A stretch of DNA of 64,000 nucleotides. Source: Mizuhopecten yessoensis. Its lineage: Eukaryota. Under the pieces are notes generated by a model, which worked only from the letters and a program-made list of their open reading frames with translations, was not told where the DNA came from and ran no database searches. Numbering within the stretch: position 1 is the first letter of the stretch; each line of letters opens with the position of its first letter. Positions 21,801-56,200 of this stretch are shown piece after piece. Location of the stretch: assembly GCF_002113885.1 (NCBI RefSeq), contig NW_018406484.1, positions 281,179 to 345,178 of the forward strand, in the 5' to 3' direction. The translations under genes were made by a program, and so were the position numbers.

Positions 21801-22670
21801 AAGGTAAGAGTAATAAGTAGGAGGTTGGGAAGGCAAAGCTGAGGTAAGAGTAATAAGTAGTGGGTTGATGGGTTAGTCAAAGCTGTGGTAAGAGCAATAT
21901 GTAGTGGGCCGAAGGGTTGGTCAAATCTGAAGTAAGAGCAATAAGTAGTAGGTTGGTAAGTCAAAGCTGAGGTAAGAGCAATAGGTAGTGGGTGGATGGG
22001 TTAGTCAAATTTAAGGTAAGAGTAATAAGTAGTAGGTTGGTAAGTCAAAGCTGAGGTAAGAGCAATAGGTAGTAGGTGGGTTAGTCAAAGCTGAAGTAAG
22101 AGTAATAGGCAGTAGGTGGGTTAGTCAAAGCTGAGGTAAGAGCAATAAGTAGAGGGTGGATGGGTTAGTCAAAGTTAAGGTAAGCGTAATAAGTAGTAGG
22201 TTGGTGAGTTAAAGCTGAGGTAAGAGTAATAAGTAGTGGGTGGTGGGTTAGTGTCAATTTCATCTGCATCGGACAGTTAGAAAACTAAGTTTGAACACTT
22301 TAACGTATTGCGATTAATCAAAGTAAAACTTGAAGCATTGTTGTTAGAAAAGTACATTGCAACACTTTAATGAATGAAGATGTATCAAAGTAATTCTTTC
22401 AGCAAGGTCTGCTTTACATTTAAAATAAAAATGAGAGAGTTAATGTTATATAATATTGTATTAAAATTACCTCATATGCTGCGGTATTATTATAGTAAAC
22501 ATTTTATAATAACGTATTAATGACTCCATCAAGTGCAGTATCATTGATATGATTTATTGTTGCATTTGTACTCTTCCTGATATATTTTGATCATGTCTTT
22601 CTTTTTATAGGACAACGAAATAGTCAAGAGGTTGCTTCCAAGTCGACACATCGGTATATTCATGGGATGA
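18897..22670 (+). CDS. EPDR: Ependymin-related secreted protein, gene A (5 exons, 233 aa)
   Basis: Exons 18897-19172, 19410-19500, 20396-20515, 20957-21111, 22611-22670 join in frame (702 nt, phases 0,1,1,0). Hydrophobic signal peptide, then ependymin-type motifs CEFPTQW, GTYFYDYPNQQMRLD, FHE-QAVYTLD..TC, WAGVPSDA, CSP, FLD...VFNTPPHC with four conserved Cys. AATAAA at 22678. Intron 3 donor is GC. Family-level symbol only; orthology is not claimed. Confidence 0.88.
19901..20156 (+). mobile_element. tRNA-derived SINE (V-SINE-like core) in intron 2 of gene A, with 11-bp target-site duplication
   Basis: A box TGGTGCAGTGG and B box GGTTCGATTCC. Core TTTTCTCCGGGAACTCCGATTCCCTCCCA resembles the V-domain. 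AT-rich tail. ATCATATTAAG flanks both sides (19890-19900, 20157-20167). Confidence 0.85.
21112..22252 (+). repeat. ~40-48-bp minisatellite beginning at the exon-4 donor of gene A
   Basis: Repeats of GTCAAAGCTGAGGTAAGAGTAATAAGTAGTGGGT.. (about 25 copies). The first copy overlaps AAG|GTAAGTCATAGCTGAG. Confidence 0.93.
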
Positions 22671-24213
22671 CTGTTGGAATAAAATAATTACTTCATATAC
22701 CGAAAGTGATTTGTTTTTTTCTCGCTGATAAGGTTTATACAATTTGCTGTCCGAAACACATGTAGCTACGTGAAGTACCACGGTAATCATTAAACATTGA
22801 ATCATTAAACAAAACAATGATAAAATGACCATAATTATTTGCAAATGGCTCTCAACACTTTTTTCAACATATTTGATATAGAATGATATACATCTCATAA
22901 GAAACGCGATGGAAAATATTGCATTTAAAAATACAACTTTTTCACTCAAAACTTCTTTGATAACAACGTACTGGACTTTCTCGGATGTGGGCGTCATACA
23001 GGAAATTGTATCTCACCTTTTGAGTTTTTATTTGAGTCGGACAATATATGATCTTCATCGCACATAGAACTAAACAATGACAAAAAAGCACACTGAAGCA
23101 CAAACAAAATCGTAATTCTAACTCAAAATCGATGAAACCTGGGCAAAGCATGAATAAATGATAGATTTGCATAAGGACACTTAAAAACACAAAACGAATA
23201 AGACATAGAAGGCAACCGAAACTTCAATCCTTATTTTAGGAAAAAAAAGATAGCGTCCTCAAAGTGGGAACCCTAATAGTGACAAAGAAAAAATACCGAT
23301 ACTTATATCTTTTAAGAGAATATCATATTTTCTGATATATCATGATGTCGACCATTAAAGATACACGCATATGATCGCAACTATTATTGTGTAATTGATA
23401 CAGTATGTCTAAAAGGATCCATCGGTGGTGCTGAGGCCAGGAAGGCGGAAATCCAAATTTATTTAAACTGCTGTTGAAACAGAAGGGGAAGTGCATTTGA
23501 CCCCTTCATTACATGAATATATTTGAAAAAGAAGAGGTTAGCTTCTAATAAATATGAGTATCTATAAATTCATTAAGATGTAATCCTAAGGAAAAAAAGA
23601 AAAAAAAGATACTTTGTCCAAATATGTAAGAATCGCTAGTAGAAGACGACAAAATGTAATGAATTAAGTCAATTGTATCTAGTGTTTGTCAGTAATACAT
23701 TACTATGTCCTTATCATCAAATATTATTCTATTATTAATAACATTATTTTTAGCAGTACATGATATCTCTCGACACCTCTAGGAGTAGGTGCGGAAGTGG
23801 TGTGTATGTGTGTAGTAAAAGCTTAAGGAAATAAATGAACTTGAACTTGAGTAAAGTATGTATATTATATACCAAGCCACAACTCATAAGAGGTCGCTGT
23901 TACTTGATTTCATTTTCAAGACAGTTTATACGATAGGTGTCGAAAGAACTTTCAAGTGATTTAAATATATAACATAATGACGAAATGAATTGAAGAACAT
24001 CGTAAGGTATTTCGTTCTTCTCCCGACAAGTTCTTCGATGAATGCTGCATAAAATGGTAGCAAAACCTAATCGATCAAAAGAGGAAGATAGTTTACCCCG
24101 ATAGAAAATCGCTATGTTGGAGGTAAACTTTTGACACTAAATTGAAAACAAAATTGTCAATCAGGGATACAATCACCATCAATATCAATTTCAGTATATT
24201 TCGTCGTGGCCTT

Positions 24214-24402
24214 TATTCCGTCTTTGCGTATTGCAGAGTTATATTCTCTTGGGAGAAGGAATTGATTGTTACGTCATTGGTTTGTGCGAGAAAATTACGT
24301 CGTTTTCTCAAAAATTGATGACGTTCCCCCTCAAACAAGTGACGTAACAATCAATACCTGCTCCCAAGAGAAGATAACTCTGCAATACGCAAAGACGGAA
24401 TA
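24214..24402. mobile_element. Palindromic MITE
   Basis: Terminal inverted repeats TATTCCGTCTTTGCGTATTGCAGAGTTA / TAACTCTGCAATACGCAAAGACGGAATA, with imperfect pairing continuing inward. TA lies at both ends. Confidence 0.85.
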
Positions 24403-26150
24403 GCGCATTTCACAAGGTTTACAAAAAACAAATAGTTCATACCTACATGGCTGGGAAGCAATTAAATAAGAATATCCGTAAAACATTACTGTGGTGCTGT
24501 TGTATTTGGAGCACGGAAGTATTTCTGTTTCGGCTAACCTGTGGTGAGAGATGTTAAATCGTTGTCGTCGTCGTCCATTTAATTAAAGTAATAATAATAA
24601 ACAAAAATAAAATGATGTAGATATACAACAATTAATATGCTATAAATATTTTAAAAGATCGTTTGTGCTCCAATGTTGAGTAAGATCCGGAAAATACCTT
24701 AAAACCTGAAAAGAGAAGTCATATATCATAATCTAGATAATCAACTAAAAGAATCGGTGGTTACTAAGCACGAGCTAGTTATGCTAGCAACGTGAACACA
24801 TTTTGATAAGTTATCTCATCTTCAGTGGAATGACAAATCAATGAAAACTTATAATTTCACTAGAAAGAATATTTACAAGGTAGCTATCAGGTATGTTGAC
24901 GTCAAAATAATCGTGTTTTGTCCTTGATTCAAGAGCAGATATACTTTATGTCACAGTTTGCTCCATTTATACATATTTATAATGGTGACCGTGACATATA
25001 TACTAGTGATAAACATGTAAATAGGTAATACAATACCAAGTATACGTACTCAGATTACGGCATGATTACGTACAATAATTGCTATAAATAGGAAGTAAGG
25101 GAGCATCTGTCTAAAGTTTAGCTTAGCGACAAAGATAGCCACACAAAGTAAACAATTAAGGCCAAAAGAATAAAAGTTAAACCTAATCCTAAAGATACCT
25201 GTAGTGTATAGCGGAAGGGAAAGGTGGCCATTCATTTGTAAAACCATTCATAATGGTACAACTGTTTGACTACGACAGATAACATATTATTGAACCCCAT
25301 TTTTTTATGTCTGGATATAGTCCAGCTACAAGATTATGGCAAAACTCGGAAAGTGGCAGTCGTCCAGCAGAGCCCACCAGCAGAGTCCATCATCTTTTTG
25401 CGTAAAATAGAAACGCGGAATAATAAGATTTTAATACATCATATAGAAGGAAAAATGCTATCGTATATCTCACCAGTTAAGCATGGGGTATCTAACTTTA
25501 AGTCATGTAATAAAGATACTATCATCATGACATATCTTTTTTTCTTTACCTGACACCAAGAAAAGGCGAATATAGTGAAGTAATACGACTCCTTCCTACG
25601 AGAGTGCTAGTCACCAGAATTGCTGTCAACGGAGGAGAAGGTTTATAGATATGTATGCTACTCTGATTAACTCCTACACAATGTGATTAAAATGAAATAT
25701 GCCGGGATTGTTTTGGCTGTAAAATAAATAGAACAAACAGCGAAAAATCTCAAGTGATAACTTTTTCCTTGCGAGACAGCTCGACGACGAAGGATTGACG
25801 CCAAATAGAATACTGACTGAGTGAATGAATGGTGGACCCAATATCGTTGTCAACAGAAATAGTGATTGATAGGTCGAACTAGATACGAAGTAACTAGAAC
25901 AAATACAATACATTGTCATGGAATAGTGACACTGCAACATCTAAAAACTAACATTACAGTTATACCGAAGAAAATATGTATTCTAGTTAATCGGTACACT
26001 TGTATTGATGATATACATTTTAATATTTGCCCACGTCTCAAAATATTATCTGATTGTCAGCCAATACCTTGACTCCTTTGATACTGTACATACGTATTCG
26101 ATTTAACGATAACTCGGTGATAGGCTAAACCGTTCAGATAGCGTACAAAC

Positions 26151-28900
26151 ATGGACGCTTTCATCAAATGTTTGCTGTTCCTGTCGATCCTTTCAATAAC
26201 AGCAGCAATACTGCAAAATGAAATTGGTGTGCATTGCACATTTCCGCCATCATGGCAAAGCAAGGTTTTCTTTGAATCTGGTGAGTTGATCATGTCTATT
26301 CCAGAACTGATGAATGCTACTGGAACATATTACTACGACTATCCCAGTCAACAGATGAGACTTGACCTCAAGGGTTTGGCATCACTAGGCAACGTGCCGC
26401 TCTCAAATACCTACATCTGGCATTTCAATGAGGTAAGGAATAAAATACATATATGTACCACTTAAATGAGTGTTCTTTTGTTATTAATACATGAAATAGT
26501 CGAAAATGGTACTTTCTTAAAACACGATAATTTGCGGTCTTGTTAATAACAGTTACTTTCCATCTATGCAACAAAGTTTTTGCCAAATCTAAACTCTTTC
26601 AATTTCCTTAAACCTTTGACTCAGACTTTGAGATATTTCAAGCAAGTGGGGCATGCATTTCAATGTTGTAGCTACAATATAACAGTCATGGATTTTCTAG
26701 CTTCTCGAGTTTTTGCTTTTATAATTTCACATAAGATATCATGTCTGACATCGGATTATGTTTTCTATCGATTGTATCAAAGATTTTTGTTTTAAGTTTC
26801 TTTCCAAAATTCGGTTAATGTATAACCTTTATATTAATCCTGTGTGAATGACTAATGGCTTATATACAAGCACGTGATCATAAAATATAACTCGCAAAAC
26901 TTTAAAGTCGTGGTATAAAATAAATTCCGACTATACGATATAATTTAGGATTCTTTTGAAGTCATCACTAATTCAAATGTTCTTTATGTAATGTATTACA
27001 GAGTACAGTATACATTATTGATAACGACAACCACACCTGTACCAAGGACAAGGATAGCGACTACATATGGAACCCATGGAATGGTGTGCCATGTGCGTGT
27101 ATTATTATGGGTTTTTATATACTTGTTTATCTACGGTCAATGTACTATTTACATTTTTCCCGCTGGATCAGTAAAGTAAATGATGCGGTACTTGTTTAAC
27201 TGAATAGCAGATATACATACCAAATTGCGTCACATGGTACATTATTACCAACTACTCATATCGAAATAGATACCAGTGTAAATATATGACGTTATATAAG
27301 AAAATATCCATACGAAGAGTTCAGACATAGCTATAAAGAACATTAAATAATATGTGGGCGTTTCATTTGATTAGCAATCAACATTTGCGATAATCTTTCT
27401 CTGGAACATTTTTCTGATTTGGAAACTATTAACTTCGTATGTTTACCATACGAACATGCATGCTATATTTCAAAAATAAGAAAATGTTATATATATGTCT
27501 TCATATAAAAACAGTGCTAAGCGTGCTTTAGAAGATTTTTACAGGTATGTAAATTTGTAATTTGTGAAACTGTTCGTTCATCAGCAAGATAATTTAAGAA
27601 ATTGTGAAAACTTATCCTCAAGCTGTAGATCCTGTGTGGATTGTTTCTGTATAGAACAATTCTCTGGATGAAGATTCTGTGATAGTGTTTAATATGATAT
27701 TGATGCGTTAACAGTGGACGCCCACTCGGACTGGCATGGTGGTGTAGGGGACTTTCAGCAGATCACAGAGCACTTCACGCTGATCAGGAAGGAACTGTAC
27801 GCTGACGTCATCCTAACGCTAGACGTTAAAGTAGGTAGGTTTGACATGAACAACAGCTTCTTTAATATTTATATGATTTGTGTGGCAACTTATCACTGTC
27901 TCTTTGTAATACTTAGAGGATCTGTTTGTCAATATATCATTTTACCGTCGTGATATTTACACGATATGTCATATCATTGTATTTTTATAATATCTCCAGG
28001 AAAGGTCTGTCCACCTATTCGTTATAACAACCAAGACAAAGACTACGACCCTGCAAGTGGAGCGATAGTCAACTACGAATTCGTGGACCCACAAGACCTT
28101 TCCGACCACAGTGTGTTTACCCTGCCCTCGTTTTGTGCCAGTGCCAAATCTTCACAGGTAAGCTAGATCATACAGATTACGTCATAGGTAAGCTGGTTCA
28201 TACAGGTAACGCCAAAGGTAAATTGGATCATACAAATAAAGACACAGGTAAGCTAGATCAAACAGAGATAACATCACGGGTACGTTTGATCATACAGGTA
28301 ACGTCAAGGGTAGCTTGATACTAAGATAACACCATCGGTAATCTTGACCATTTAGATACAGGTAAGCTAGATCAAACAGAAATTACGTCACAGGTAAGCT
28401 GGGTCATACAGAGATATAACGTCACAGGTAAGCTGGGCCATATAGATCCTCATACAATTTGTCCTTGTATAACAAGAATATCTATACCTGCATGAATCAT
28501 AGTTATTCTCAAAAAGACGAAATACCTCTTATCTTAATATTTATGCTATGATACATAAGTGAAAACTTTAATCGTACTAGTGTTACCTTTCCTTCCTCAG
28601 TAAGAACTTTATCGGGATTTTTGATTCAGTGTTTCATCAATTCCTATTCTTTTTCATCTACCTTGAATTAAGAATTTGTCTGCGTGTTGTGGTTGTAATG
28701 TTATTTCTGTTAGAAAGAAAGTACATTGACATCTGCATCATATACAACTATAAAAATATCAATAAACACTGGGCATATATCTATATTAAGTTTCTGTCTT
28801 GCCCATTTGTGATGTTTGTATGTGTTTATTCGTTTCATAGCACAGCCTAATGGGAAGAAGATCATTCTCTCCGCGGTTCCATCGACTCTTCATGGGATAG
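26151..28900 (+). CDS. EPDR: Ependymin-related secreted protein, gene B (5 exons, 236 aa)
   Basis: Exons 26151-26432, 27002-27092, 27715-27834, 28000-28157, 28841-28900, all GT-AG, 711 nt in frame. Signal peptide, CTFPPSW, GTYYYDYPSQQMRLD, TC, WNGVPLDA, CPP, VFTLPSFC. Ends RRSFSPRFHRLFMG*. Confidence 0.9.
28150..28445 (+). repeat. ~30-bp minisatellite beginning at the exon-4 donor of gene B
   Basis: Repeats of ACGTCACAGGTAAGCTGGATCATACAG that copy the exon end/donor TCACAG|GTAAGC. Confidence 0.85.
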
Positions 28901-31039: not shown

Positions 31040-31423
31040 CATACTTACTTATAAAATGGGTTTTTTGTATGCTATACGACACAATTGCTCTAACCCATAT
31101 CAGCCCTCGCCGTATCACACCCCAAAAGCCATATTAGCTTCCGCCGTATCACACCCCAAAACCGTATCAGCCCTTTCCGTATCAGCCCGCAAAACCCGTA
31201 TCACACCCTATTTGGAAATGTTTCGTTTTTCAATATTTCAAAAGAAAAATAGATCATAAGATAGTAGCTTTTATAAGAAAGTATAATATAAACAGAATAA
31301 AACATGCCCTTTTCCATATCACACCCAGTATCAACCCTCGACCAATATCAGGTCATCGGGCTGATATTGCAGTCTCGGATTGACACTCGGTGTGATATGG
31401 AAAAAGGCATGTATTATTCCCTA
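31040..31423. mobile_element. Non-autonomous element with long internal hairpin, absent from the second duplication unit
   Basis: Inverted arms ACATGCCCTTTTCCATATCACACC.. / ..GGTGTGATATGGAAAAAGGCATGT (31302-31412) and internal CCGTATCACACC repeats. The empty site is at ~42575. Confidence 0.7.
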
Positions 31424-33719: not shown

Positions 33720-34971
33720 TAATTAAGTGTCATCTGTGGTCGTCGATTTCAAATAAAGTGTTATCTGTGGGCGTCGATTTCTAATTAAGTGTTACCTGTG
33801 GTCGTCGATGTCTGTTTAAGTGTTATCTGTTGGTCGTCGATGTCTTATTAAGTGTTATCTTTGGTCGTCGATGTTTAATTAAGTGTTATCTGTTGGTCGT
33901 CGATGTCTGATTAAGTGTTATCGGTGGTCGTTGATATCTAATTAAGTATTATCTGTGGTCGTCGCCGTCTAAGTAAGTGTTATCTGTGGGCGTCGATTTC
34001 TAATTAAGTGTTATATGTTGTCGTCGATGTCTAATGAAGTGTTATCTGTGGGCGTCGATTTCTAATTAAGTGTTATCTGTGGTCGTCGATGTCTGATTAA
34101 GTGTTATCTGTGGTCGTTGATATCTAATTAAGTGTTATCTGTGGTCGTCGATGTCTAATTAAGTGTCATCTGTGGTCGTCGATGTCTAATTAAGTGTTAT
34201 ATGTTGTCGTCGATGTCTAATTTAGAGTTATCTGTGGTCGTCGATGTCTAATTTAGAGTTATCTGTGGTCGTCGATGACTAATTAAGTGTTATCTGTGGT
34301 CGTCGATGTCTAATTAAGTGTTATCTGTGGTCGTCGATTTCTAATTAAGTGTTATCTGTGGTCGTCAATGTCTAATTAAGTGTTATCTGTTGGTCGTCGA
34401 TGTCTAATTAAGTATTATCTGTGGTCGTCGATGTCTAATGAAGTGTTATCTGTGGTCGTCAATGTCTAATTAAGTGTTATCTGTGGTCGTCGAAGTCTAA
34501 TTAAGTGTTATCTGTGGTCGTCGATGTCTAATGAAGTGTTATCTGTGGTCGTCAATGTCTAATTAAGTGTTATCTGTTGGTCGTCGATGTCTAATTAAGT
34601 ATTATCTGTGGTCGTCGATGTCTAATGAAGTGTTATCTGTGGTCGTCAATGTCTAATTAAGTGTTATCTGTGGTCGTCGAAGTCTAATTAAGTGTTATCT
34701 GTGGTCGTCGACGTCTAATTAAGGGTTATCTGTGGTCGTCGATGTCTAATTAAGTGTTATCTGTGGTCGTCGAAGTCTAATTAAGTGTTATCTGTGGTCG
34801 TCGACGTCTAATTAAGTGTTATTTGTGGTCGTCGATGTCTAATTAAGTGTTATCTGTGGGCGTCGATGTTTAATTAAGTGTTATCTGTGGTCGTCGATGT
34901 CTAATGAAGTGTTATCTGTGGTCAAGAATGTCTAATTAAGTGTTATCTGTGGTCGTTGATGTCTAATTAAG
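33720..34971. repeat. 31-bp minisatellite (~40 copies) preceded by a T28 tract (33663-33690)
   Basis: Unit AATTAAGTGTTATCTGTGGTCGTCGATGTCT. Confidence 0.97.
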
Positions 34972-36977: not shown

Positions 36978-37259
36978 ATGGACGCTTTCATCAAATGTTT
37001 GCTGTTCCTGTCGATGCTTTCAATAACATCAGCACTACTGCAAAATGATATTGGTGTGCATTGTACATTTCCGCCATCATGGCAAAGCAAGGTTTTCTTT
37101 GAATCTGGTGAGGTGCTCATGTCGATACCAGAAGTGATGAACGGTACTGGGACGTATTACTACGACTATCCCAGTCAACAGATGAGATTTGACCTCAAAC
37201 TCCAGGCATCACTAGGCAACGTGCGGCTCTCAAATACCTATATCTGGCATTTCAATGAG
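36978..37259 (+). CDS. EPDR: Intact exon 1 of ependymin-related gene C (first copy; downstream intron cut by N at 37801)
   Basis: 94 open codons ending GAG|GTAAGG, close paralogue of gene B exon 1. The following intron matches 39103-39642 and stops at the single N just before exon 2 would start. Spliced to 39675 it gives a complete 236-aa protein. Confidence 0.75.
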
Positions 37260-38820
37260 GTAAGGAATAAAAACATATGTGAACCACTCAAACGAGTATT
37301 GTTTAGTTATGAATACATGAAATAGTCGAAAATGATACTTTCTTAACACACGATCAGTTGTGTGCATGTAAGCAAGAGCTACTTTGCCTCTATACAACAA
37401 TGGTTTGGCCAAGTCTAAACTCTTTCAATTTCCTCATACCTTTGACGCAGACTTTGATATATTACAAGCAAGTGAGACATGTACTTTAATGGTGTAGCTC
37501 CAATAACAACAATAGATTTTTAGCTTCTCGAGTATTTCCTTTGATAATTTCACATAAGACATCATGTTTAACATAGAATTATGTTTTCTCTCGATTGCAT
37601 CAAAGGTCTATGTTTTAAGTGTCTTTCTAATACAATGTATAAAGGCTATGGGAAACACCGAATATGCCAACTTGTGTGAATGACTGATGGCTAATATACA
37701 AGCACGTGATCATAAAATATAACTCGCTGAAATTTAGAGCCGTGGTATAAAAAAAATCAGACTATACGATATAATTGATGATTCTTGTGTTATAATCACT
37801 NCATTCTGTAAATAGGTAATACAATACCAAATACGTACTCAGATAACGGCATCATAACGTAGAATAGTTCTGTAAATGGTAATACAATACCAAGTATACG
37901 TACTCAGATAACGGCATCATAACGTAGAATAATTCTGTAAATAGGTAATACAATACAAAGTATACGTACTCAGATAACGGCATCATAAGGTAGAATAATT
38001 CTATAAATAGGTAATACAATACCAAGTATACGTACTCAGATAACGGCATCATAACGTAAAATAATTCTGAGTAAGGAAACCTCTATCGAACGGGTACCTT
38101 GGCGACGACGACAGCCAAACAATGTAAAGATTATACTGTGCCGTATGGCCACTTCATCGATTAAGGTGTGTTCCGAAATATATCGGTACACCACAGAGAA
38201 CATTAAAAGATGCCCATACATTTGTTAACCCTTTATAACGTTACAAGTGTTCAACTTTTCTCTACAACAGATAGCATATTCTTACACTGCAATTTTATGT
38301 CAACAGTGCCAGAACAATTCCAGCTACACGGTTTCGGCAAAAGTGGTAGTCCACCAGCAGAGTCAACCAGTAGAGTCCACCATCTTTTTGCGTAAAACAG
38401 AAACGTGGAATAATCAGATTATAATACATCATATAGAAGACGAATGATATCGTTTATTTCACCAGTTTAGCATGGGGTCTCTTACTTTAAGATATGTAAT
38501 GAAGGCAATATCATCATTACATATGTTTTACTTCTTTACCTGACGCCAAGAAAAGACAAGAGTGCTGGTCACCAGAATTGCTGTCAACGGAATACAGGAA
38601 AGTCGAAGGTTTTTTTATGTATATTGTATACATTAATCCAAGAAAATTTGATTAAAGTTTATCGGTACACTTTTATCAATGAACTATCATTTTATATTTT
38701 ATATCTCGAAGTGTTTAATCTGATTGTCAGCAAATACCCTACAACCTCTCATACTGTACTTACGTATTAAATTTAACGATAACTCAGTGATAGGCTAAAC
38801 AATTCAGATAGCGTACAAAC

Positions 38821-41800
38821 ATGGACGCTTTCATCAAATCATTGCTGTTCCTGTCGATGCTTTCAATAACAACAGCACTACTGCAAAATGAGATTGGTGT
38901 GCATTGTACATTTCCGCCATCATGGCAAAGCAAGGTTTTCTTTGAATCTGGTGAGGTGCTCATGTCGATACCAGAAGTGATGAACGGTACTGGGACGTAT
39001 TACTACGACTATCCCAGTCAACAGATGAGATTTGACCTCAAACTCCAGGCATCACTAGGTAACGTGCGGCTCTAAAATACCTATATCTGGCATTTCAATG
39101 AGGTAAGGAATAAAAACATATGTGAACCACTCAAACGAGTATTGTTTAGTTATGAATACATGAAATAGTCGAAAATGATACTTTCTTAACACACGATCAG
39201 TTGTGTGCATGTAAGCAAGAGCTACTTTGCCTCTATACAACAATGGTTTGGCCAAGTCTAAACTCTTTTAATGTCCTCAAACCTTTCACGCAGACTTTGA
39301 GATATTACAAGCAAGTGAGACATGTACTTTAATGGTGTAGCTCCAATAACAACAATAGATTTTTAGCTTCTCGAGTATTTCCTTTGATAATTTCACATAA
39401 GACATCATGTTTAACATAGAATTATGTTTTCTCTCGATTGCATCAAAGGTCTATGTTTTAAGTGTCTTTCTAATACAATGTATAAAGGCTATGGGAAACA
39501 CCGAATATGCCAACTTGTGTGAATGACTGATGGCTAATATACAAGCACGTGATCATAAAATATAACTCGCTGAAATTTAGAGCCGTGGTATAAAAAAAAT
39601 CAGACTATACGATATAATTGATGATTCTTGTGTTATAATCACTAAATAACATATTCTGTATATATGTATTACAGAGTACAGTATACACCATTGATTACGA
39701 CAACCACACCTGTACCAAGGAAAAGGATAGCGACTACATATGGAACCCATGGAATGGTGTGCCATGTGCGTGTATTATTATGGGGTTTTATATATTAGTT
39801 TATCTATATGGTCAATGTACTATTAACATTTTCCACGCTGGATCAGTAAAGTAAATAATGCGGTACTTGTTTAGCTGAATAACAGATGTACATGCCAACT
39901 TATATTACATGGTACATAATTACAATCTACGCATATCGAAATAGATAACAGTGTACATTTATGACCTATTTCATGAAAATATCAATACCAAGAGTTCAGA
40001 TACGATTTGTATCTATAAAGAACATTAAATATATGTGGTCGGGTTGGTTCATTTGATTTTTAATAAAGATTTATTATTATGTTTCTCTTGAACAATTTAT
40101 TTTGATTAGGAAACTATCAGCTTCATTTGTATACCATGCAAACATTTATGTTATATTTCAAAAAGAAGAAAATGTAAAATTTTGTATCACAATGTCTTCC
40201 TTCAAAAAAAGGTGCTACGCTTGCTAAAGAAAATTTGTATATTGAGCAAGACATTTTAACAGGTATCTAAATGTGTAATTTGTGAAATTGTTGTTCATAA
40301 ACAAGATAATATAAGTAATTGTAAACACTTCTATTCACGCTGTTGATCACGTGTGGATTTGTTTCCTGATATAAAACTCGAGCTGCCAAACCCATGAGAA
40401 CAACTCTCTGGGTGAGGAACATGCGATAGTGTTTAACATGATAATGGTACGTTAACAGTGGACGCCCACTCGGACTGGCATGGTGGTGTAGGGGACTTTC
40501 AGCAGATCACAGAACACTTCACATTGATCAGGAAGGAACTGTACGCTGACGTCATCCTAACACTAGACGTTAACGTAGGTACGTTTTGACATTAAGAACA
40601 GTTTCTATAATATTTATATGATCTGTGTGGCTACTTATCATTGTCCTTTGTTATACTTACAGGATCTGGCTGTCAATAGAGTATTGCATCTTTATAATAC
40701 TTGCATGATCTGTCAGCAAACATCATAGTATCTATAATGTTAGCAGGCACTGACTTCTAACATATCATTGTATCCTTATAATATATTCAGGAAATGTCTG
40801 TCCACCTATTCGTTATAACATCCAAGACGAAGACACCGATCGCGCGAGTGGACTGATAGTCAACTACGAATTCGTGGACCCACAAGATCTTTCAGACCGC
40901 AGTGTTTTCATCCTGCCTTCGTTTTGTGCGAATGCCAAATCGTCACAGGTAAGCTGGATCATACATATAACGTCACAGGTAACCTGAATCATACAGAAAA
41001 CGCCACAGGTAAGCTAGATCATACAGGTAACGCCAAAGGTAAACTGGATTGTACAAATAACGCCAGGGGTAAGCTTGCTCATACAGGTAATCTTACAGAT
41101 AAGCTTGATAATAAGATAACACAATCGGTAAGCATGATCGTACAGGTACAGGTAAGCTGGATCATACAGAGATAACGTCACAGAAAAGCTGGGCCATACA
41201 GAGAAATTACGTCACGGGTAAGCTGGGTCATACAGAGATATAACGTCACAGGTAAGCTGGGTCATACAGAGATATAACGTCACAGGTAAGCTGGGTCATA
41301 CAGAGATATAACGTCACAGATATGCTTGATCATACAGAGAAATTACGTCACATGTAAGCTGGGTCATACAGAGATATAACGTCACAGGTAAGCTGGGTCA
41401 TACAGAGATATAACGTCACAGGTAAGCTGGGTCATATATATCCTCATACAATTTTTCATTGTATAGCAAGAATATTTATACCTGCATGCGTCATAGTTAT
41501 TCTCAAAAAGTTGAAATACCTCTTATCTTGATGTTTCTGCAATTACACAAACGTAAAAATGTATTAATCGTACTATTGTAACCTTTCCTTCCTCAGGAGT
41601 TACATTATCGGGATTATTGCTTTAGTGTTTCATCCATTCCTGTTTCTTTTTCATCGACATTTGATTAAGAAGTTGTCTGCGTGTTGTAGTTGTATTGTTA
41701 TATTTGGTAGAAAGAGAGAATATTTACATCTGTATCATATACAAATATAAAAATACCAATGAACTTTGGGCATACAATAATAGTGTGTTTCTGTCTTGCC

Positions 41801-41896
41801 CATTTATGATGTTTGTATGTTTTATTCGTTTCATAGCACAACCCAATGGGAAGAAGAGCATTGTCTCCGCGGTTCCATCGGCTCTTCATGGGATAG
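38821..41896 (+). pseudogene. EPDR: Ependymin-related gene C, complete exon set; this exon-1 copy has a premature stop (null allele, pseudogene or base error)
   Basis: Exons 38821-39102, 39675-39765, 40459-40578, 40791-40948, 41837-41896. Codon 85 is TAA (39073-39075), where the first copy and gene B have TCA. Exons 2-5 are intact with GT-AG and end RRALSPRFHRLFMG*. Confidence 0.65.
40940..41440 (+). repeat. ~30-33-bp minisatellite beginning at the exon-4 donor of gene C
   Basis: Repeats of ACGTCACAGGTAAGCTGGGTCATACAGAGATATA. The array is longer than its counterpart in gene B. Confidence 0.9.
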
Positions 41897-43530
41897 AAAT
41901 GAAGCCATGAGACTTTGTTTAGAAAAGAAGAAATTAGAAATGGTTACGAGCATGTATAAGAGTAGTTATAATACATTACGTTTGTAATCCAAAGTGTGTT
42001 GAATTACAAGTAATGAAGAGGGTATTCTTAATATATATGATAAAAACTTTCTGAGATTATGAACTTGCGAAGGTGCTCATGTCAAAGTATCGGCTAATCT
42101 AAAACCAATAATGTAGTTAATGCACCTATTATGTCTACAATATCATAACAGATGATTTACGTAAACGGGATGGTTCATTATAAGATAATTTTGTAATATT
42201 GTTTTTCAAGTGCTCGTTTTGCTAGTCTGTGTGGTGTGATAAACATCCTAGAACGTCGTAGACTGTTAACCACCCACGAAAGTAAACGTATTCAAACAGT
42301 TATATTCCATACTGTGACGGTGTGATATCAACAGTTATTTATATAGAACTAGTTGTTAGCTGAAGGCTGAGTATCAAAATCTATGAAGGATTTAACCAAT
42401 ACTTCTGTTTGTGTATTTTTTTATAATGGTGGCGGTCAAAATAGTTTGTTCAACTCTAGCTTGTTCAACTCTAGCATGTTCAACTCTAGCTTGCAACTAA
42501 ATCCTGAAATACCTGTATAGCGCTTTGTGTACTAGTGTGTTGATTCAAACGGACGTATGATGATATAAATAAAGGCTTTATAACACCAATTGAATACAAT
42601 GGTATTTTTGTTTTATTTTGTTATTTGTCATTGATTTGTTTATTTGCGATTACGACACAAGAAGAATTAATCGAATATTTCTTGTGTTGTACCTTGTCAA
42701 TACAAAAATCACTTCGAGAATCCCTATTTATAAAACTTACTTAGGGATTCCCATTTTAGTGAAAGAGAAGTCATATTACCGCTATAACAATGAGATTAAT
42801 AGCGGATGCGCTATTTACAATTTATGCAATGTTAAACCCACATGGACAGGATTACACTACATACACGGGTTCTATATACACATCCATTGTCATTAATGTA
42901 TTTTCAATCGGCCTCGAAATTACTTTCACTGACTAGCTTTCCTTGTTAAAATAGTACGTCGTGCTCTCGCCATGAGGCAATACAACCTGACGAGAAAACG
43001 TTAACGAACCTGTCTCTGACTAGCGTGATCGAGAAAAAATCTGCATCTGTACATACAATATTATTTCTGTCGTGTACTGCGCGTACAAAATAGTTATTCA
43101 ATGACACTTATCATATACATGACATCAAGTGAAATGATATAAGACCTTATTTATAAGCATATGGTGATAAAACTATAACAGTTGACTAATGCATTATGTA
43201 AACTAGAGTATATGATCAGTAAATGTTTAACTTTAATTATTCACAGAAGAAAATAGATACATGTAGAAAACGCAGCTTTATAAGAACATCATACTTTCAT
43301 ATTAGTGTTTATACCACACAATGATCTTTATTTTTTATAGCAGAATAATGTGTAAACACGAGTATATGTATAAATATCATCGTGTGGTATAAAACTAACA
43401 TGAGGACAAAAACGGAAATTACTGTTCTGATTATCTGAATCAGGCTTGACCTCGTTGACAAGGATTTTTATCTACAAATTTTAATTCAAACAAAATGTCG
43501 TTGAGAGGTGAGACATGGCCTAGATAAATC

Positions 43531-43805
43531 ATAACGACAGGCCAAGGTCAGCACACGTATAGACGAGATACATCTACAATTAAATTATAACGACAGGCCA
43601 AGGTCAGCACACGTATAGACGAGATACATCTACAATTAAATTATAACGACAGGCCAAGGTCAGCACACGTATAGACGAGATACATCTACAATTAAATTAT
43701 AACGACAGGCCAAGGTCAGCACAGGTATAGACGAGATACATCTACAATTAAATTATAACGACAGGCCAAGGTCAGCACACGTATAGACGAGATACATCTA
43801 CAATA
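43531..43805. repeat. 56-bp tandem repeat (~5 copies; single copy in paralogous unit at ~32150)
   Basis: ATAACGACAGGCCAAGGTCAGCACACGTATAGACGAGATACATCTACAATTAAATT repeated. Confidence 0.95.

Positions 43806-44760: not shown

Positions 44761-44804
<44 letters not shown>
44761..44804. repeat. (AAC)n microsatellite
   Basis: About 14 AAC units. Confidence 0.95.
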
Positions 44805-45617
44805 AAACAATCGTCTAGTTAGATTCTTCTTAAGTATTTCAACTTAGTCTGCATTATAAAGAACCAGTGAAGACAGACGTTTTTGCGAGTGAAGTAACAC
44901 GGATATCGAAAAAGTGACGTGGAAGTCGGTATAATATACTTATCAACAGGGAATAACCTTACTCTAATAGCAGCAGACATACAGCATCCCTTCCTTGACA
45001 GTAAATTTGTATTACTGTATATACCTACTGTATGATGTAAAGGGAGTCAACTCAGGGCTCCAATCCTGAAACTCTATATATTGGCAAGGACAATAAAATG
45101 TGTAAAAAAAACCAGGAAATAAAAGTGGTTTTAATCATTCAATAAATACTGAAACACAAACATATATTGGAACAACCAACGTTTAAATATGGTAACGTAA
45201 ATGTGGATTAAATTATAATATGTATGCAGTACATACAAATTGAAAAACAATACACAATTAAATATGGAATAATTAAATACAGTAAAATGATCACGAAATA
45301 ATTGAATATATCTTATATGGTAGAATACTATTTCATTTGCATTGGACAACACATGATTATTGTAATTTGTATTGCCACGTACCACCAGTGCAATTACTTT
45401 TTTCTCTGTGTTCATCGATATATTAACAAAACATACACAGTATCAGTGCCTATTAACCTATATAAAGAAGAGTCTACAGTATAAACAAAGTTATTTGGCC
45501 TCGTATAATCAAAGTACTTTGGCCTCGTATAATCAAATTACTTTGGCCTCGTATAATCAAAGTTCCTCTGTCTAGTTGAATCAAAGTTCCCTGGCCTCGT
45601 ATTATCAAAGTACTTTA

Positions 45618-48859: not shown

Positions 48860-49195
48860 TTCGTTTTAGTGTTGAGCGTTCGCCAAGTTGAGGAGGCAAT
48901 GGGTTCTGACCCCATGCAAGGTCATTACAAAGTCCTTTAAAATAATAGTTGCTATTCCCTGCTTAACGTTCAGCATTTAGGGTAATGGCAACAACTTGTT
49001 CACCCGTCGTCAATTTAATGTGACCGGGCGTATAAAGTCGCCATTAGATCCGTGCAAGGAGGCAATTACACCAACATACCCTGTCTCCGGCACACATATA
49101 CACAGCCACGCATACACAACACTCATGGAAGCATGTCCTTAAATAACCTTATCTGTTAATAGAACATTAAACAAAATAAAATAAAACCAAACTAA
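48860..49195 (+). mobile_element. Degenerate tRNA-derived SINE (Meta-SINE-like)
   Basis: Decayed B box GGGTTCTGACCCC, core CCCTGCTTAACGTTCAGCATTTAGGG..AATGTGACCGGG, and tail CTGTTAATAGAACATTAAACAAAATAAAATAAAA. Confidence 0.55.
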
Positions 49196-49896
49196 AATTT
49201 GAAAATAATGGAACACCGATTCTAAAATCGTTTTCGAGTCGTGGTTAATTTCTTTTCAGGTTTTCCCATACTGATAACCCGTAAGAAAGAATATACAAAT
49301 GTTAGATGATAAATAGGAGTATGAAATGATAGATAAGCAATTGATATTACATAGTTCAACTTTTATTTCTGGAAATAAAAACATTATTAAAGCTGAGGGT
49401 AATCAACATGTACATATAAGTGTTAGGTGAATGTAGCAGTATAATTAAGCAAAATATAACATCATGTTTATAGGGACTAGTATAAGTAAACTGTATGTAC
49501 AAGTATTGCAATATATTGATGTGAGGGTGTTATTTACCAGATGTGTATGAGGATGAATTATACACTGTGTATACTATCATTTTGTGGTACATCAGTACAT
49601 GTGATGATAGCGGTTTAGTTACTATTAACGAAATGATAATAAAGGGAGATGTATTTGTATTTGATATCAGACTGTAAACGTGACCTAAGTCAGGTTAACT
49701 CCTGTATTAGTGATAAACGTAGATATATGTACAACACTGTATTACTACAGATTTATGTCTGTCTTGTTCATTGTGTAATCTGTTATTATCTACTTCGTGC
49801 TTTCGACATATATGTGTGTTCGTTACAACTGTGAATTGTATTTAAGTTACTTAATATTTCACAGACTCGAACATGTATTTTACCTTAATGAAAAGA

Positions 49897-52312
49897 ATGG
49901 AAGTACTTAATTTCATTCTACTCTTTTCATGTGCTATCATATCGTTACATGTTACTTTAGCAAAAACAAAACAGTTGCAGTGTAACTTTCCAGCCCAATG
50001 GCAAAGCAATGTTTTCTTTGACTTCGAAATGATGCTGGTGGCCACACAACATATCAACGCATCAGGAAGGTTTTATTATGATTACACCAACCAACAGACG
50101 AGATTTGACTTTGCTGGAATAGAGCATGCTGGCAATACTTCTGTAGACTTCACTCTCATGTGGAAGTTTAACGAGGTAAGTACAATGATTTGTCATCTTT
50201 AAGCCTATGCTTACAAATTTGGATACTGTCAGATTACTTTTTCCCCTATAGGACATGTATCAAGCATTCCAGATATTGTAAGAATGTGTTCATTTTAACA
50301 TTAAGTATAGAAATATGTGTAAATCATAACATTAGAATATAATACCTATTAATCAAACTACATACATAACGTATATCTCTTCGGTATAACAGCCAGCGTT
50401 TTACACCGTGGACAACCTCGATAAAAGCTGTGAACGAGAGGATGGTGTCAGTACCTTCTGGAACCAGTGGGAAGGAATACCAGGTAAGTAAAGAGTGTCA
50501 CTTCTGGAGAATTTAATTACAATACCGGGTATGCAGAGGAGTGACTTTTTGAATCAGTGGGAAGATATACAGGAGAAACAGGGAGGGTGTCTAATGGGTT
50601 CACTCGAAAGATATTTATACCGCGTAAATAGGGAGAGTGACTTCTTAAATCAGTTGGAATGAATCAGCGGGAAAATAATTTCAGATTCTACAACCTAATA
50701 TATAAATAAATGATACACCGCTGTCAAGCAATTGTAACGATCTTTGTTAGATAAGGCTTATTATTGAAATGTTGTAAGTAATAACGAATCTTTGTATGAA
50801 CTGATGTCTAATAAATACTTTTGTACTTTACCCATAAACACTTGTGTATTGAGAATCACTATGAATGATTGAATGAACGAAAAACCTTGGTATTTTAGCT
50901 GATGCCTCACCAGAATATTTCGGACGCTTAGGTGGTTTTAACGAAATTGTTGGACAGTACAAATGGGCGGAAAAGAATGCAGGGCCGATGGGAAATGTGG
51001 CAATAACTATGGATGTAAAAGTTGGTGGGTAATAGTGAAAGTCTCTAAATGTCATTACTGTTCCGTTTTTGAGAGAAATATGTTATGCTGTGCAATATTT
51101 TTAAGGTTAAAACAAATGCATGTATAAAAACGAAGGATATTGTGTGACAGGAAAACAAGAGATCTCATCACTGAAAATATGTTAATGACAAACCTGGTTC
51201 ACGAATGTTTATGCATAATCTACACGTTTAAAATGTTTGAAATACTAGTCTAACTTTAATAATCTGTAGTTGCCTAAAATGGTAAATTTGTAACATTTGA
51301 AATAAATGTATAATCATTCTTTCCCTTTCGTTGTATTCTACATATGGTTCGGAACACATAGGACATGGAGTTTAATTTTTTTCTGATTCTTTTGACGATC
51401 AGCACCACTGACGAGTCCTTATTGGGCGAAAAAGCAATATTGTGTATTATTTTTATTTCTTTTTCTTTTCAAATAGGTTCTTCCGTTTCTTTCTGTTTCT
51501 AGTGATATAAAAGCCAAATTTGCCTGATCAATTTGTACCGGTTAAAGGTTTTTGATGATTTGGATCACTTAGAAATGAAATATTATTTGTTCATTCCGTT
51601 GACCACTGATGAGTCCGTCATGGATGAAATGGCCATATGGTACAATCGAATGTTTACTTTGTTTCACTTTCTACACACAGGATTTTCATATAGATATGTT
51701 TCCTTTCTCCGTATAATATTGATTATGTGTTAATTGTTGTAGGTGACGTCTGTTCTCCAGTCCGTTTGACAATGCGAGAATTAAGTAAGATTTCGTATGG
51801 AGCCTTTGCTTATAACTACGAATTCTTAGATATCAGTGACATAAAGAGCCCGAATGTGTTCACGCCTCCCCCGAACTGTCACAACACCACATCATTGGTC
51901 AGTAAAGTGTTTAGCTATATATTTAACTTCATTTCAATGCGTCTGATCTATTTCACGTCTAGTATCTATATCACGTTCCCTACTCTACTCCCTGACCCTG
52001 CTACCATGATAACATGATATAAGTTGTTAACAGCATAAACCGATTATGTTTCTGTTCTCCGCTGGTGGCATAAGAAGAAGATATTAAAATGTTACTGTAG
52101 GCTTATATGTGTACCTACACCAATATACACTTCATGTAGAAAATAACATTGTTTCAAATATATGTTACAATATTATTCTAATCAAATTAAACACGAGCTC
52201 CTGTCATTTAGATATTCAAAGTTATTAAGTAACAAATGTTTCTTTTATGTTTCAGAGACATATCAACAGAATGGTTACCATTCCCAGATATTTTGGTTTG
52301 TTTATGGGATAA
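49897..52312 (+). CDS. EPDR: Ependymin-related secreted protein, gene D (5 exons, ~235 aa)
   Basis: Exons 49897 (alternative in-frame ATGs at 49873/49888)-50175, 50393-50483, 50899-51024, 51743-51897, 52256-52312, all GT-AG and in frame. CNFPAQW, GRFYYDYTNQQTRFD, SC, WEGIPADA, CSP, VFTPPPNC. Ends RMVTIPRYFGLFMG*. AATAAA near 52375. Confidence 0.88.
51403..51444 (+). ncRNA. Degenerate second hammerhead motif
   Basis: CACCA-CUGACGA-GUCC-uuauu-GGGC-GAAA-aagcaa-UA-UUGUG. Spacing is identical to the 51598 motif, but stem III is damaged and stem I has one mismatch. Confidence 0.5.
51598..51645 (+). ncRNA. Minimal type I hammerhead ribozyme motif
   Basis: ACCA-CUGAUGA-GUCC-gucau-GGAU-GAAA-U-GGCC-A-UA|UGGU: intact core boxes, 4-bp stem II, minimal stem III with palindromic GGCC loop, and stem I ACCA/UGGU. 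Predicted cut after 51637. Confidence 0.7.
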
Positions 52313-53273
52313 TTAAATCTTCAATAGCTGGCAATAATCGTTTTCTTGATTTGTCTGCTCCCCCTCTCCACATAAATAAAAACAACTTCTATAGAAAACA
52401 GAGATAATCAATGTTTATTCAGCCATAGTGATCACATACATAATATCAAATGGCTGTGAATACATCATTTCTTGATATTACAGTCATTTTGTATAAACAT
52501 TTAAATAATACCCTATAATACGGTATCTTTGGAAAACAATAAATCTGTGAAATACGTCATTTGAAGTGCTGGCAGAAATTTCCAAAAATAGTATCGTTAT
52601 TTTCTATGTATTTGTTTGCGGTAAGGGCCTCTTCGCAATAGATATGGATATAGATGTTATACGAGGACATCGTCCATCAATGATGGTGCTACTTAGGAGC
52701 TACTTGGAATAAAGCTTGAATGTCACAATCAGAACTTACTTGAAATGCTATCCAGTCATATTAGTTTACCACCGTAAAGAACGAACAAAAAGACGGATAC
52801 AGAATAGAGATCAGAAGTGTTGCATTCAGGAGCACCAAACAGCATATTAATGTTGTTATCTTCGATGTTATCTGCTTATCATAGTTATTGCTTCAGTCAT
52901 AGCGCAAAGGTAATATCATTTTAACCGACGCTAATCGGTTTTTAGCAGGAGCTCAAAATTGAAATTTCAAAAATCCTTCAATTCTAAGTCTGTAGCGGAA
53001 TTGATAGAACACGTTTAAATGGAAGGATGCTGCCTTTGCTAGGTAACATAGCTAATGATTCAAAGAACAACGCAAGAACAATTTGGGTCTGCATGCTTTA
53101 ATATTTAGGTGATTGAATAATAATTGACTGTAATACCACAATCATAGTAAAAAAAATCCGTTCTAAGTTATTACTCGAGCCATGGTAATGCTAATATCAT
53201 GATTACCGAGTGGTCTGATGCTGGATGACTCAGTCAATTCACCACTTAGAAAGTGCTTGATTTCCTCATAACG

Positions 53274-56200
53274 CTAATCCATGACAAAATCAAGGTGTTG
53301 AAATGGTAGGAATTTTCTTGTCTCTTCATTCTGTAAAACAAACACAAAACGCAAGATCATTTAAACAATAACTGGTTGTCTGGATGTAATTATTGTTGAT
53401 ATAATTACAAGTGGCCTCTGGCAAATCCCATAAAACCCGCTAGGGTTATAATAATTAATTACAAAAACAATAATTACATCCAGACAACCAGGTATTTTTT
53501 TATATATACATATTTTTCTTTTTTAAGACATATTCCTACAAAAACCATTTGCCCTGCCTCAAAATACATTTCAGGCGGCAATTTTGTTTGTGTACATATT
53601 TCTACATTGAAACAGGCAGTTGTAATTATAGTCGAGCAGTTGTAATTATAGCCTATATAATTACACTTGCCCTCTTACACTGTTGTAATGGGACGGCGCG
53701 GGGGCAAATGTAAATATACTATTGTAATGATGTAATGATCGTTGAGAGAGTTCTTGTATTATACCGATTTAGAACCATTTACGGTAATGAGATGTAAACA
53801 TGACAGAAATATCTAGGATTCATTATTACAGAAGACCTGTAGGCTTCTTAATCGAGGAGTATAATACATATTCCATTATGTTAATTGTTCTTTGTTTGTT
53901 TGACAGATTAACCATTGATAGAATCAAATCACTAACTTGTAACATCAATTCATTAATTCAAAAAATCCATAACATTAGGACATGCAACACCGTGTATATG
54001 CAACAGTGATGACTTTATTGAGTAGACACTCATAATTTCTTACAATGATATGCATGTGCAAACGGGTTGAGCAACAGGTGTAATACTTATATATATTTAT
54101 CTGTATAAATGAGAACAAGGTAGACTTAGTGTTAAGATTGTATTTATTATATATAGGAACATAGTGTAAATACTGAAGTGTACTAACCATAGACGTGGTG
54201 TTGGTACAGTTGGAAGGTGCTTTGAACACGTCTGGGTTCTTCAGGTTGGTATGATCCATGAATTCATACTGGTACATTACTCCTTCGTACGGGTCGTCAT
54301 GCAAGTCCTGGAACATTACACGGAGGGGAGGGCACCAATCACCTAAATAAACACAAGTGCATTTCTGTCAAAGATTTTGTCAGGTTTAACGATTTGTTTG
54401 AATTATCGCGTATACATTTTATTGAATACATATTCTTCCAGAAAAAGAGGTTCCCCAACAGGTGATAGCCGGTTAACATGTCTATCTTACTCGAGTTAGC
54501 TAATTTTCAAATTGGGTAAAGACACCAGGTTTACCGAGTGTCTTTTATGAATTGAAAATTACCTAAATGAGTAAGATAATCACAATAATCAACTTTCAGG
54601 ATATCGGGGATCCTTTTCCCTCACATCGTTCAGATATTATATCTAGAAAACCAAATATTTCTCTTAGGAATATATTGTTACTAATTCCGATCGGAGAAAC
54701 AATTGCCATGAAATATGACGTCACAATGGAAGATGATGTCGCCAAGCATTGTTACTAGACGACATGACAGGAGGATTGACAAACGAAATAGCGTACAGGG
54801 TGTTACCCACTAGTGGGTAACTTAAAAAGTTCGCTAACCAACTAAAAGAATCCATACATATTTTTTAACACACCCACCAATAAATAAATAAAAACGTGCA
54901 CGCCTACCCATTTTAATCCTCACATAGAAATATCAACGTATACACATCACAACTCTTGTACTAACACTGAAATATCAACTTCCACACGCACACACACTTA
55001 ATTCCCTGAATGAATATATAGATTTCTACTATCTCATTTGAATTTTACAAAAATATCTCCTGACCCCTTTTTTTCTCATATGTATACATTAATTTAATTA
55101 GATTACATATATGTACACATACCCACTTGAACATCCATCACAACACGAATACCATTGTCTGTAGGGGGATCGTCTTTTATATCCAAAACAAATTGTCCAA
55201 CTATTTTTTTAAATCCGCCTATACCTCCAAAGTAGGTGGGATATGATGCAACTGAAAAAAATACAAAGTTTTATTTTTAATCCGATCAAGTTTGACCGAC
55301 TGCTGAAGAATTAGATAATGAAAACGAAATAAATATCATCTCCAGACAGATAGCATGTGAATATATATTCATTTCCAGACTCGATACAAAAATATCACAT
55401 TTTAGAAAAGGATCTAATTGGGATATACGCTACTTTTGGCGTGGTATGATTACTAGCTGTTTAACGGACTCATGCATGCAATGCCTTCCCTGCAAATATT
55501 TCCTTTTTCCATATTTTTGCCCTAGTTTTATCGATTGTAAACTCGAATGTCGTTTACTTCACATTTAGAAACATATTTATTTTATATTTTTTCTTAGGTT
55601 TATGTTTCCCTGTACAGTGTATAATTATGTTATCCTTATAGAGTGAATCAATGATTTATGTTCCATATCATATCCACCAAATACATATGTTCACAAACTA
55701 CATATACTTACGAGGAACACCATCTGATTGTTCTGATACAACATATCAAAAGTGTGGGGAATGCCAACCCACTGATCAACTCTACAATATATATTACTTA
55801 CGGGGAACGCCCTCCCACTGATCCACTTTACAATATGTATTACTTACGGGGAATGCCCTCCCACTGATCCACTCTACAATATATATCACTTACTGGGAAT
55901 GCCCTCTCACTAATCCACACTACAATATATATTACTTACGGTGAATGCCCTCCCACTGATCCATTCTACAATATATATAACTTACGGGGAATGCCCTCCC
56001 ACTGATCAACTCTACAATATATATCCCTTACGGGAAATGCCCTCCCACTGATCCACTCTACAATATATATTACTTCCTGGGAATGCCCTCCCACTGCTCC
56101 ACACTAAAATATATATTAATTACGGGGAATGCCCTCCCACTGATCAACTCTACAATATATATTACTTCCGGGGAACGCCCTCCCACTGATCCACTTTACA

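Follow-up and report, generated by a model that had tools for sequence, protein, structure and literature searches.

Ependymin-related proteins (EPDRs) are widespread secreted proteins whose functions are poorly understood. The stretch of DNA analysed here (the window) comprises 64,000 nucleotides of the genome of the scallop Mizuhopecten yessoensis (contig NW_018406484.1, positions 281,179 to 345,178 of the forward strand) and carries five EPDR genes, designated A to E, each made of five exons, the last of which encodes a short C-terminal tail. A previous reading of this DNA, made from the letters alone (the sequence-only reading), had claimed that exon 5 of every gene lies after the last ependymin Cys and encodes only 18-19 residues, and that the tails look like cleavable, amidated peptides. 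The first of these claims was correct, and the five tails are encoded exactly as they had been quoted. The genes, their fourth exons and their tail exons are listed below, in window coordinates and with the evidence on which each model is based.

18897..22670, plus strand: gene A, five exons (LOC110451946); tblastn with P0012/P0002 and splice sites
20959-21111, plus strand: gene A exon 4, in-frame part; splice sites
22611-22670, plus strand: gene A tail exon; Lys-Arg site, then a -GIFMG-stop end
26151..28900, plus strand: gene B, five exons; tblastn with P0014/P0004 and splice sites
28002-28157, plus strand: gene B exon 4; splice sites
28841-28900, plus strand: gene B tail exon; Arg-Arg site, then an -RLFMG-stop end
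36978..41896, plus strand: gene C, five exons (LOC110451937); database protein P0019
40793-40948, plus strand: gene C exon 4; database protein P0019
41837-41896, plus strand: gene C tail exon; Arg-Arg site, then an -RLFMG-stop end
49873..52312, plus strand: gene D, five exons (LOC110444682); P0018 and RNA contigs
51745-51897, plus strand: gene D exon 4; P0018 and RNA contigs
52256-52312, plus strand: gene D tail exon; single Arg, then a -GLFMG-stop end
53274..61659, minus strand: gene E, five exons (LOC110451939); P0001 and RNA contigs
54188-54340, minus strand: gene E exon 4; P0001 and RNA contigs
53274-53330, minus strand: gene E tail exon; Arg-Lys site, then an -FVMD-stop end, a variant without Gly

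The partial protein P0012 is 100 % identical to exons 1, 4 and 5 of gene A, and P0019 is 100 % identical to gene C at 36978-37259, 40790-40948 and 41837-41893, while P0018 and P0001, once mapped on the window, are identical to the exons of genes D and E, respectively. No identical database protein was found for gene B, which was analysed as single exons; for the other genes, the full-length products were the database proteins identical to the window exons. Genes B and C share 89 % identity over the reading frame of the last exon and, as near-identical copies, they are not independent witnesses. The paralogues are divergent: their identity is 33-47 % in exon 4 and 34-47 % when whole proteins are compared. 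Exon 1 of gene C exists in two copies lying 1.8 kb apart (36978-37259 and 38821-39102), of which P0019 fits the distal one at 100 % and the nearer one at 95.7 %; in the genome search, the match to the nearer copy (38821-39102) contains a TAA. The window holds a single N, at position 37801.

All five tail exons are terminal coding exons of 18-19 codons, found where the sequence-only reading had placed them. Each is preceded by a polypyrimidine tract and an AG, and exon 4 of each gene has a GTAAGT-like donor in phase 0, located 6-7 codons past the last Cys. When the 64 kb window is translated in all six frames, the string FMG-stop turns up only four times, every time at one of these exons, the number expected by chance being, as a rough estimate, about 0.2; the statement that a terminal Phe-Met-Gly-stop is kept in genes A to D was thus borne out. 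As for the basic site, it is dibasic in A (Lys-Arg), B and C (Arg-Arg) and E (Arg-Lys), but gene D has a single Arg preceded by Asn.

The joint between exons 4 and 5 is found as predicted in the database proteins for A (P0012), C (P0019), D (P0018) and E (P0001). In addition, RNA contigs were aligned to positions 49800-55300, which span genes D and E (the RNA nature of the runs is presumed, and the contigs are intron-free). Transcript contigs X1, X5 and X8, derived from three independent studies, contain the exon 4-5 joints of gene D (51896/7 to 52255/6) and of gene E (53330 to 54188), and the gene E joint from 54340 to 55121 was likewise present in contigs of three studies. GT..AG joints in the contigs account for every intron of gene D and for two of gene E (introns 3 and 4). 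The remainder of intron 4 had no contig depth in gene D and, in gene E, none outside the repeat, and the raw-read poly-A run X24 yielded no reads on the exons of D or E, but only on the repeat within intron 4 of E. Therefore, the exon 4-5 splicing anticipated from the letters was verified in RNA for D and E and in database models for A, C, D and E, while that of gene B rests on its likeness to C and on matching splice sites.

Several repeats lie within the introns that precede the tail exons. In intron 4 of gene A (21111-22252), a 44-nt unit is repeated 27 times in tandem, starting at the last base of the exon, and in intron 4 of gene C (41148-41436) a 34-nt unit with CAGGTAAGCTGG is repeated 8.6 times. 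In both cases, the unit reproduces the end of exon 4 together with its GTAAG donor, and the arrays are of the same kind as one found in intron 2 of gene E. Splicing from a donor copy within an array would shift the frame before the tail. As for intron 4 of gene E, positions 53356-53718 are occupied by a multi-copy element, which shows high depth in all RNA data sets and from which around 80 % of the raw reads continue into unlike sequence; its joints between opposite strands suggest inverted repeats, resembling those of a miniature inverted-repeat transposable element.

When the exons were scanned one by one, Pfam returned two weak Ependymin matches (E 0.009-0.05) and, for this reason, family membership was taken from the database proteins and from the fold. 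Precomputed PF00811.26 assignments exist for P0019 (C), P0018 (D) and P0012 (A), and a search of the family profile against the PDB sequences matched EPDR1 at E 4.7e-5. Among 15 scallop proteins, Cys107, Cys168 and Cys210 never vary and Cys29 hardly does, which reproduces the four-Cys pattern of EPDRs, and all the full-length proteins have, ahead of the first Cys, a hydrophobic N-terminal segment that is about 20-27 residues long. AlphaFold2 models were obtained for the products of D and C, based on 12 and 15 sequences and with predicted TM scores (pTM) of 0.65 and 0.67, respectively. Foldseek matched these models to human, mouse and frog EPDR1 at E ~1e-9 (5.5e-10 for the human protein), and VIA-align gave a Z of 17.2 to human EPDR1 (6e8n) over 179 residues and, for the ependymin-related blue carotenoprotein EPD-BCP1 of a sponge (8I34), a Z of 16.7 with a root-mean-square deviation of 2.4 over 165 residues; VioE and LolA ranked after these two. 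The cluster genes thus encode true EPDRs, sharing with EPDR1/MERP (6E8N, 6E7O, 6JLD) the LolA-like beta-clam fold, with its hydrophobic groove for lipids, and the arrangement of Cys residues. The best explanation for these observations is that they specify lipid carriers of a scallop-only EPDR subfamily, whose secretion and lipid carriage are predicted. Carotenoids accumulate in scallops. The presence of EPD-BCP1 (8I34) among the best structural matches, together with the fact that invertebrate EPDRs can carry carotenoids, makes a carotenoid ligand for the cluster a possible and testable hypothesis by analogy. However, the trimmed alignment to EPD-BCP1 ends at model residue 211, with no aligned counterpart of the tail.

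The distribution of the tail was surveyed by several routes. When a profile built from the exon-4 translations of the five genes was searched exhaustively, it found four EPDR clusters only, all of them from scallops, although the profile is short and narrow and distant tail-bearing relatives could be missed. A word-index search with a 12-sequence profile, considering E values up to 10, retrieved exclusively Pectinidae among 2390 candidates, and the database relatives come from Mizuhopecten yessoensis, Pecten maximus, Ylistrum balloti and Argopecten irradians. Within the genome of M. yessoensis itself, the subfamily profile gave matches only in the cluster, which extends beyond the window, and in a few small duplicate contigs. 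The two additional cluster members are the following.

G000:C3157:345350-349250, starting 172 nt past the window end: gene F, a sixth paralogue (P0005, LOC110451938), with a tail ending in -LFVG
G000:C3157:358209-358367, about 9 kb past exon 4 of gene F: a degenerate exon-4-like relic without the last Cys motif

The same genome contains other EPDR genes, which were recovered with Pfam PF00811 on contigs C5595, C5283, C5478 and C5488. These canonical EPDRs share with the cluster the PF00811 domain and its ...Val/Ala-Phe-x-Pro-Pro-x-x-Cys end, but they have no fifth exon, basic site or Gly end: six of their frames stop 1-15 residues past the last Cys, within the same exon, and a seventh runs on and may be spliced. 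When the donors of the cluster genes are read through, a stop appears after four codons in A and after two in B, which fits the notion of an ancestral stop that was skipped over once the donor and the fifth exon had appeared. Judged by these comparisons, the tail is an addition to EPDR made in the scallop family (Pectinidae), and a real, conserved and lineage-specific feature. The idea that it could form a strand or a helix built into the fold was discarded, given that canonical EPDRs of the same genome lack it and that it is modelled with a predicted local distance difference test (pLDDT) score of 31-39. An unannotated E-type gene was located in Ylistrum balloti (L047:16560-16960, minus strand), in a gene order equal to that of the window (D+, E-, F+). 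Its exon 4 is frame-broken, and a tail was searched for at this locus and not found. The end of this exon and its donor (...NPDVFKTPDNC... followed by GT) are present in three tandem copies; therefore, arrays of donor copies recur in another genus.

For the comparison of the tails, a set of 18 from four scallop genera was assembled. In their common layout, a linker that varies and frequently holds an N-glycosylation sequon comes first, followed by a basic site, a conserved Pro-x-Arg, a hydrophobic Leu/Ile-Phe-Met end and a Gly cap; none of the 18 contains a Cys. Column identity, with a mean of 0.47 in the protein body, is 0.08-0.12 in the linker (first five tail positions), which is the least conserved part of the protein, 0.49 at the basic site, 0.64 at the inner Arg, 0.74 at the Phe and 0.72 at the terminal Gly. 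The existence of an end motif at 0.72-0.74 beside a linker at around 0.1, in the clades A, B/C, D and F, whose identity is only 34-47 %, argues that the end motif is under selection, albeit with a Gly and a cleavage site that are not absolute. The same contrast bears on the notion that the tail is functionless, that is, an accident of exon gain kept by descent. The family is indeed young and tandemly duplicated, with B and C near-identical, as such a notion would assume; however, neither the gap between motif and linker nor the conservation of the motif across four genera would be expected from mere descent, so that this already disfavoured reading is considered highly improbable.

The terminal Gly is present in 13 of the 18 tails and, within the window, in A to D but not in E. 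The Asp-ended tails are those of gene E and of the Ylistrum B/C type, both of which keep the preceding residues; the D-type tails of Pecten and Argopecten end directly on -LFV and -IFI, as confirmed on genomic DNA, and the truncated tail is that of the Argopecten F type. The hydrophobic end persists even where the Gly or the basic site has been lost. Another possible account of the tail would be a C-terminal sorting or protein-binding motif (directed to a storage granule, to the extracellular matrix or shell, or to a receptor), requiring neither amidation nor cleavage, in which the Gly or the Asp would act as a small cap. This would agree with a short conserved motif placed at the extreme C-terminus of a disordered tail, and with the change from Gly to Asp in two lineages while the preceding residues remained intact. 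However, it leaves unexplained both the Gly in 13 of the tails and the positioned dibasic site, and we know of no sorting motif of such a form; it is, on balance, improbable.

A basic residue is found at a fixed distance from the end, 11-13 residues, in 15 of the 18 tails and is missing in three. The site is dibasic in all the A and B/C tails, reaching a full RxKR in the Ylistrum and Argopecten B/C types (RVKR / RKKR), and is reduced to Asn-Arg in the D and F types. The basic site and the Gly thus recur in orthologues from three other scallop genera, but not in every tail, as the above counts for the Gly and the basic residue indicate. These marks are the basis of the proposal, already contained in the sequence-only reading, of a precursor with two products. 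In such a case, a convertase would cut after Lys-Arg or Arg-Arg (after the Arg in D), a carboxypeptidase would remove the basic residues and peptidylglycine alpha-amidating monooxygenase (PAM) would act on the Gly, yielding the carrier and a free Phe-Met-amide peptide of 11-13 residues, or of 6 if the conserved inner Arg were also cut. The fixed position of the basic residue, the dibasic sites of A and B/C, the frequency of the Gly and a linker whose column identity resembles that of prohormone spacers are all in line with this possibility.

The evolution of the peptide points in the opposite direction. The A-type peptides of different genera have 10/12 and 8/12 residues in common, compared with about 70 % identity for the whole protein, and the identity of the last four columns ranks 64th among 229 windows; hence, the peptide changes about as fast as the domain, and the mature peptide was not the most conserved part of the precursor, as it would be in a prohormone. 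Moreover, the residue that would be amidated varies (M/T/V/I). Because of these two traits, the conservation of the peptide, as gauged from the aligned tails, is unlike that of a receptor-bound neuropeptide. The loss of the Gly in five tails and the lost or weak basic site in the D and F clades, together with the atypical placement of one peptide on a folded, glycosylated domain of 210 residues, further detract from the proposal of two products, which is therefore regarded as rather doubtful. Equally uncertain, and somewhat unlikely, is the role, either in signalling or in host defence, that a short cationic peptide of this kind might have, restricted to scallops and perhaps transported or presented by the carrier.

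Information on the shape of the tail came from the AlphaFold2 models. In two independent models, the tail has a pLDDT of 31-39, compared with 75-90 for the cores, and it is thus predicted to lie outside the fold, flexible and unanchored. A tail with these properties would be reachable by processing enzymes, a circumstance that also favours the release of a peptide. In crystals of human EPDR1, the rim of the lipid groove is made up by loop L12, which the Cys88-Cys222 disulfide fastens to loop L4 and which is not traceable when ligand is missing (PMC6363788). The C-terminal stretch that follows the conserved Cys in EPDR1 runs along this rim and is mobile without ligand, and the human protein ends at residue 224, two residues past Cys222, with its C-terminus tied down by that disulfide. 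The scallop tail differs from this arrangement in that it is longer, lacks Cys and is therefore not tethered in this way, is encoded by its own exon and has the pattern of a basic site followed by Phe-Met-Gly. When the low-confidence residues were kept, the superposition of the model tail (to residue 230) on the human protein reached residue 222, where L12 ends, which provides a weak hint, taken from the models, of the position that the tail may occupy.

Enzyme families relevant to the processing of such tails are present in M. yessoensis. Its genome contains convertase P-domain loci and members of the PHM-type copper monooxygenase domain family, although the Pfam model used for the latter (PF01082) is not specific for PAM. 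PAM is able to amidate whole secreted proteins that end in Gly, such as Fc fusions and antibodies, also in non-endocrine cells, and its binding to the substrate is helped by a hydrophobic penultimate residue (PMC4482046). These Fc-peptidyl-Gly fusions and antibodies (PMC4482046) have, like the scallop proteins, a Gly exposed at the C-terminus of a large folded secretory protein, a kind of end on which PAM can act, but they are engineered or incidental cases, whereas in scallops the genes of a natural family have conserved such an end. Amidated peptides have been reported from M. yessoensis, in which the MIP precursor contains -SSIFM-Gly-Lys-Arg and the opioid-like precursor contains YGSLFM-Gly-Lys (PMC5996578). 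Therefore, amide ends of the -IFM and -LFM type are plausibly made in this species, which also lends some weight to a released peptide. Both precursors share with the EPDR genes a signal peptide and basic cleavage sites, both of them putative in the EPDRs, and a Gly after Ile/Leu-Phe-Met; however, they are small and unfolded, with many peptide copies and a Gly followed by Lys or Arg (PMC5996578), whereas the EPDR tails are present in one copy on a folded 210-residue domain, with a Gly followed by the stop. By analogy with these systems, the exposed -Phe-Met-Gly end is a credible candidate PAM substrate, with or without prior cleavage of the tail, and the putative cleavage and amidation of the tails are plausible from their sequence.

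Published work on the species was also consulted. Ependymin is absent from the 63 precursors and from the LC-MS/MS lists of a study of the ganglion transcriptome and peptidome of M. yessoensis (PMC5996578), which constitutes weak evidence, as it covers the ganglion only, but nevertheless counts against a released peptide. A literature search did not retrieve the predicted peptide strings, or the term LFM-amide used in the same sense, nor did the literature on ependymin and scallops or yessoensis yield anything on the C-terminus; the remark in the sequence-only reading that it knew of no description of such a tail in EPDRs is in keeping with this outcome. In sum, the two-product proposal retains the use of the exon, an accessible tail and recurring processing marks, and it is weakened by their incomplete conservation and by its absence from the ganglion lists.

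Two other candidates were considered and rejected. Tachykinins are characterized by the signatures FxGLM-amide in deuterostomes and FxGxR-amide in protostomes, and the scallop ends G-I-F-M, R-L-F-M and G-L-F-M fit neither of them, so that the loose likeness to the Met-amide end of tachykinins previously suggested could not be maintained. Similarly, a signal for a glycosylphosphatidylinositol (GPI) anchor calls for small residues at the omega site and, beyond a spacer, for some 10-20 hydrophobic residues in a row, whereas the tail has 18-19 residues in total, several charges and at most 3-4 consecutive hydrophobic residues.

An ancestral EPDR that ended just past its last Cys gained a splice donor at this place and, with it, a fifth exon. 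The reading that we favour for the resulting tail, albeit tentatively, is that it is retained, is probably amidated and provides a hydrophobic latch or contact with the groove rim or with membranes, which could be removed at Lys-Arg or Arg-Arg in some cells. The persistence of the hydrophobic end in tails without the Gly or the basic site, the flexibility of the tail and the ability of PAM to amidate whole proteins speak for this reading. In this model, the tail would leave the cell still attached to the protein. PAM would convert the exposed -Phe-Met-Gly of A to D into an uncharged Met-amide, while E would keep a free acid. Aided by the basic residues, the hydrophobic end may then serve as this latch or contact, in the place that the disulfide-tethered C-terminal loop L12 occupies in vertebrate EPDR1, and cells rich in convertases may cut the tail off at the Lys-Arg or Arg-Arg of A, B and C. 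The sequence-only reading had contemplated an alternative of this sort, an amidated or removable segment that plugs the hydrophobic pocket, and this alternative fits the data at least as well as a free peptide does.

Several points weigh against a retained latch. In the AlphaFold2 models, the tail is not docked with confidence, and its overlap with L12 depends on positions modelled at pLDDT <40, from alignments of only 12-15 sequences. Amidation, tail retention and contact with the groove are, all three, inferred. The strictly positioned Lys-Arg or Arg-Arg (of the full furin type, RxKR, in the B/C tails of Ylistrum and Argopecten), together with a Gly at the very end, is what classically distinguishes an amidated peptide that is released. 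The tails that end in Val or Ile would place a charged carboxylate on the supposed latch. Finally, canonical EPDRs work without any tail.

The surroundings of these genes are also peculiar, the region of the window being unusually rich in minisatellites. One array (11526-18706), some 200 nt upstream of gene A, contains 104 copies of a 69-nt unit at 98 % identity, with open frames on both strands and a unit of 23 residues, and may correspond to a satellite or to repetitive coding sequence. Further tandem arrays are found at 2769-4666 (nested 24/294-318-nt units), 33720-34971 (31 nt x 40) and 43525-43804 (56 nt x 5).

Taken together, the cluster offers a clean and datable case of exon gain, in which a tail of the processing type was added to an EPDR and then persisted as the gene duplicated in tandem within a single family of bivalves. 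If this tail turned out to be amidated or released, no EPDR before it would have had a peptide product or an amidated lid, and forms with or without the tail, or with Gly or Asp, would offer an experimental means of studying how the carrier opens, docks or signals. If it were only a sorting or structural tail, it would still explain the greater length of the proteins of the scallop cluster compared with other EPDRs, and it would serve as a caution that the motif-based prediction of neuropeptides can flag tails of this kind.

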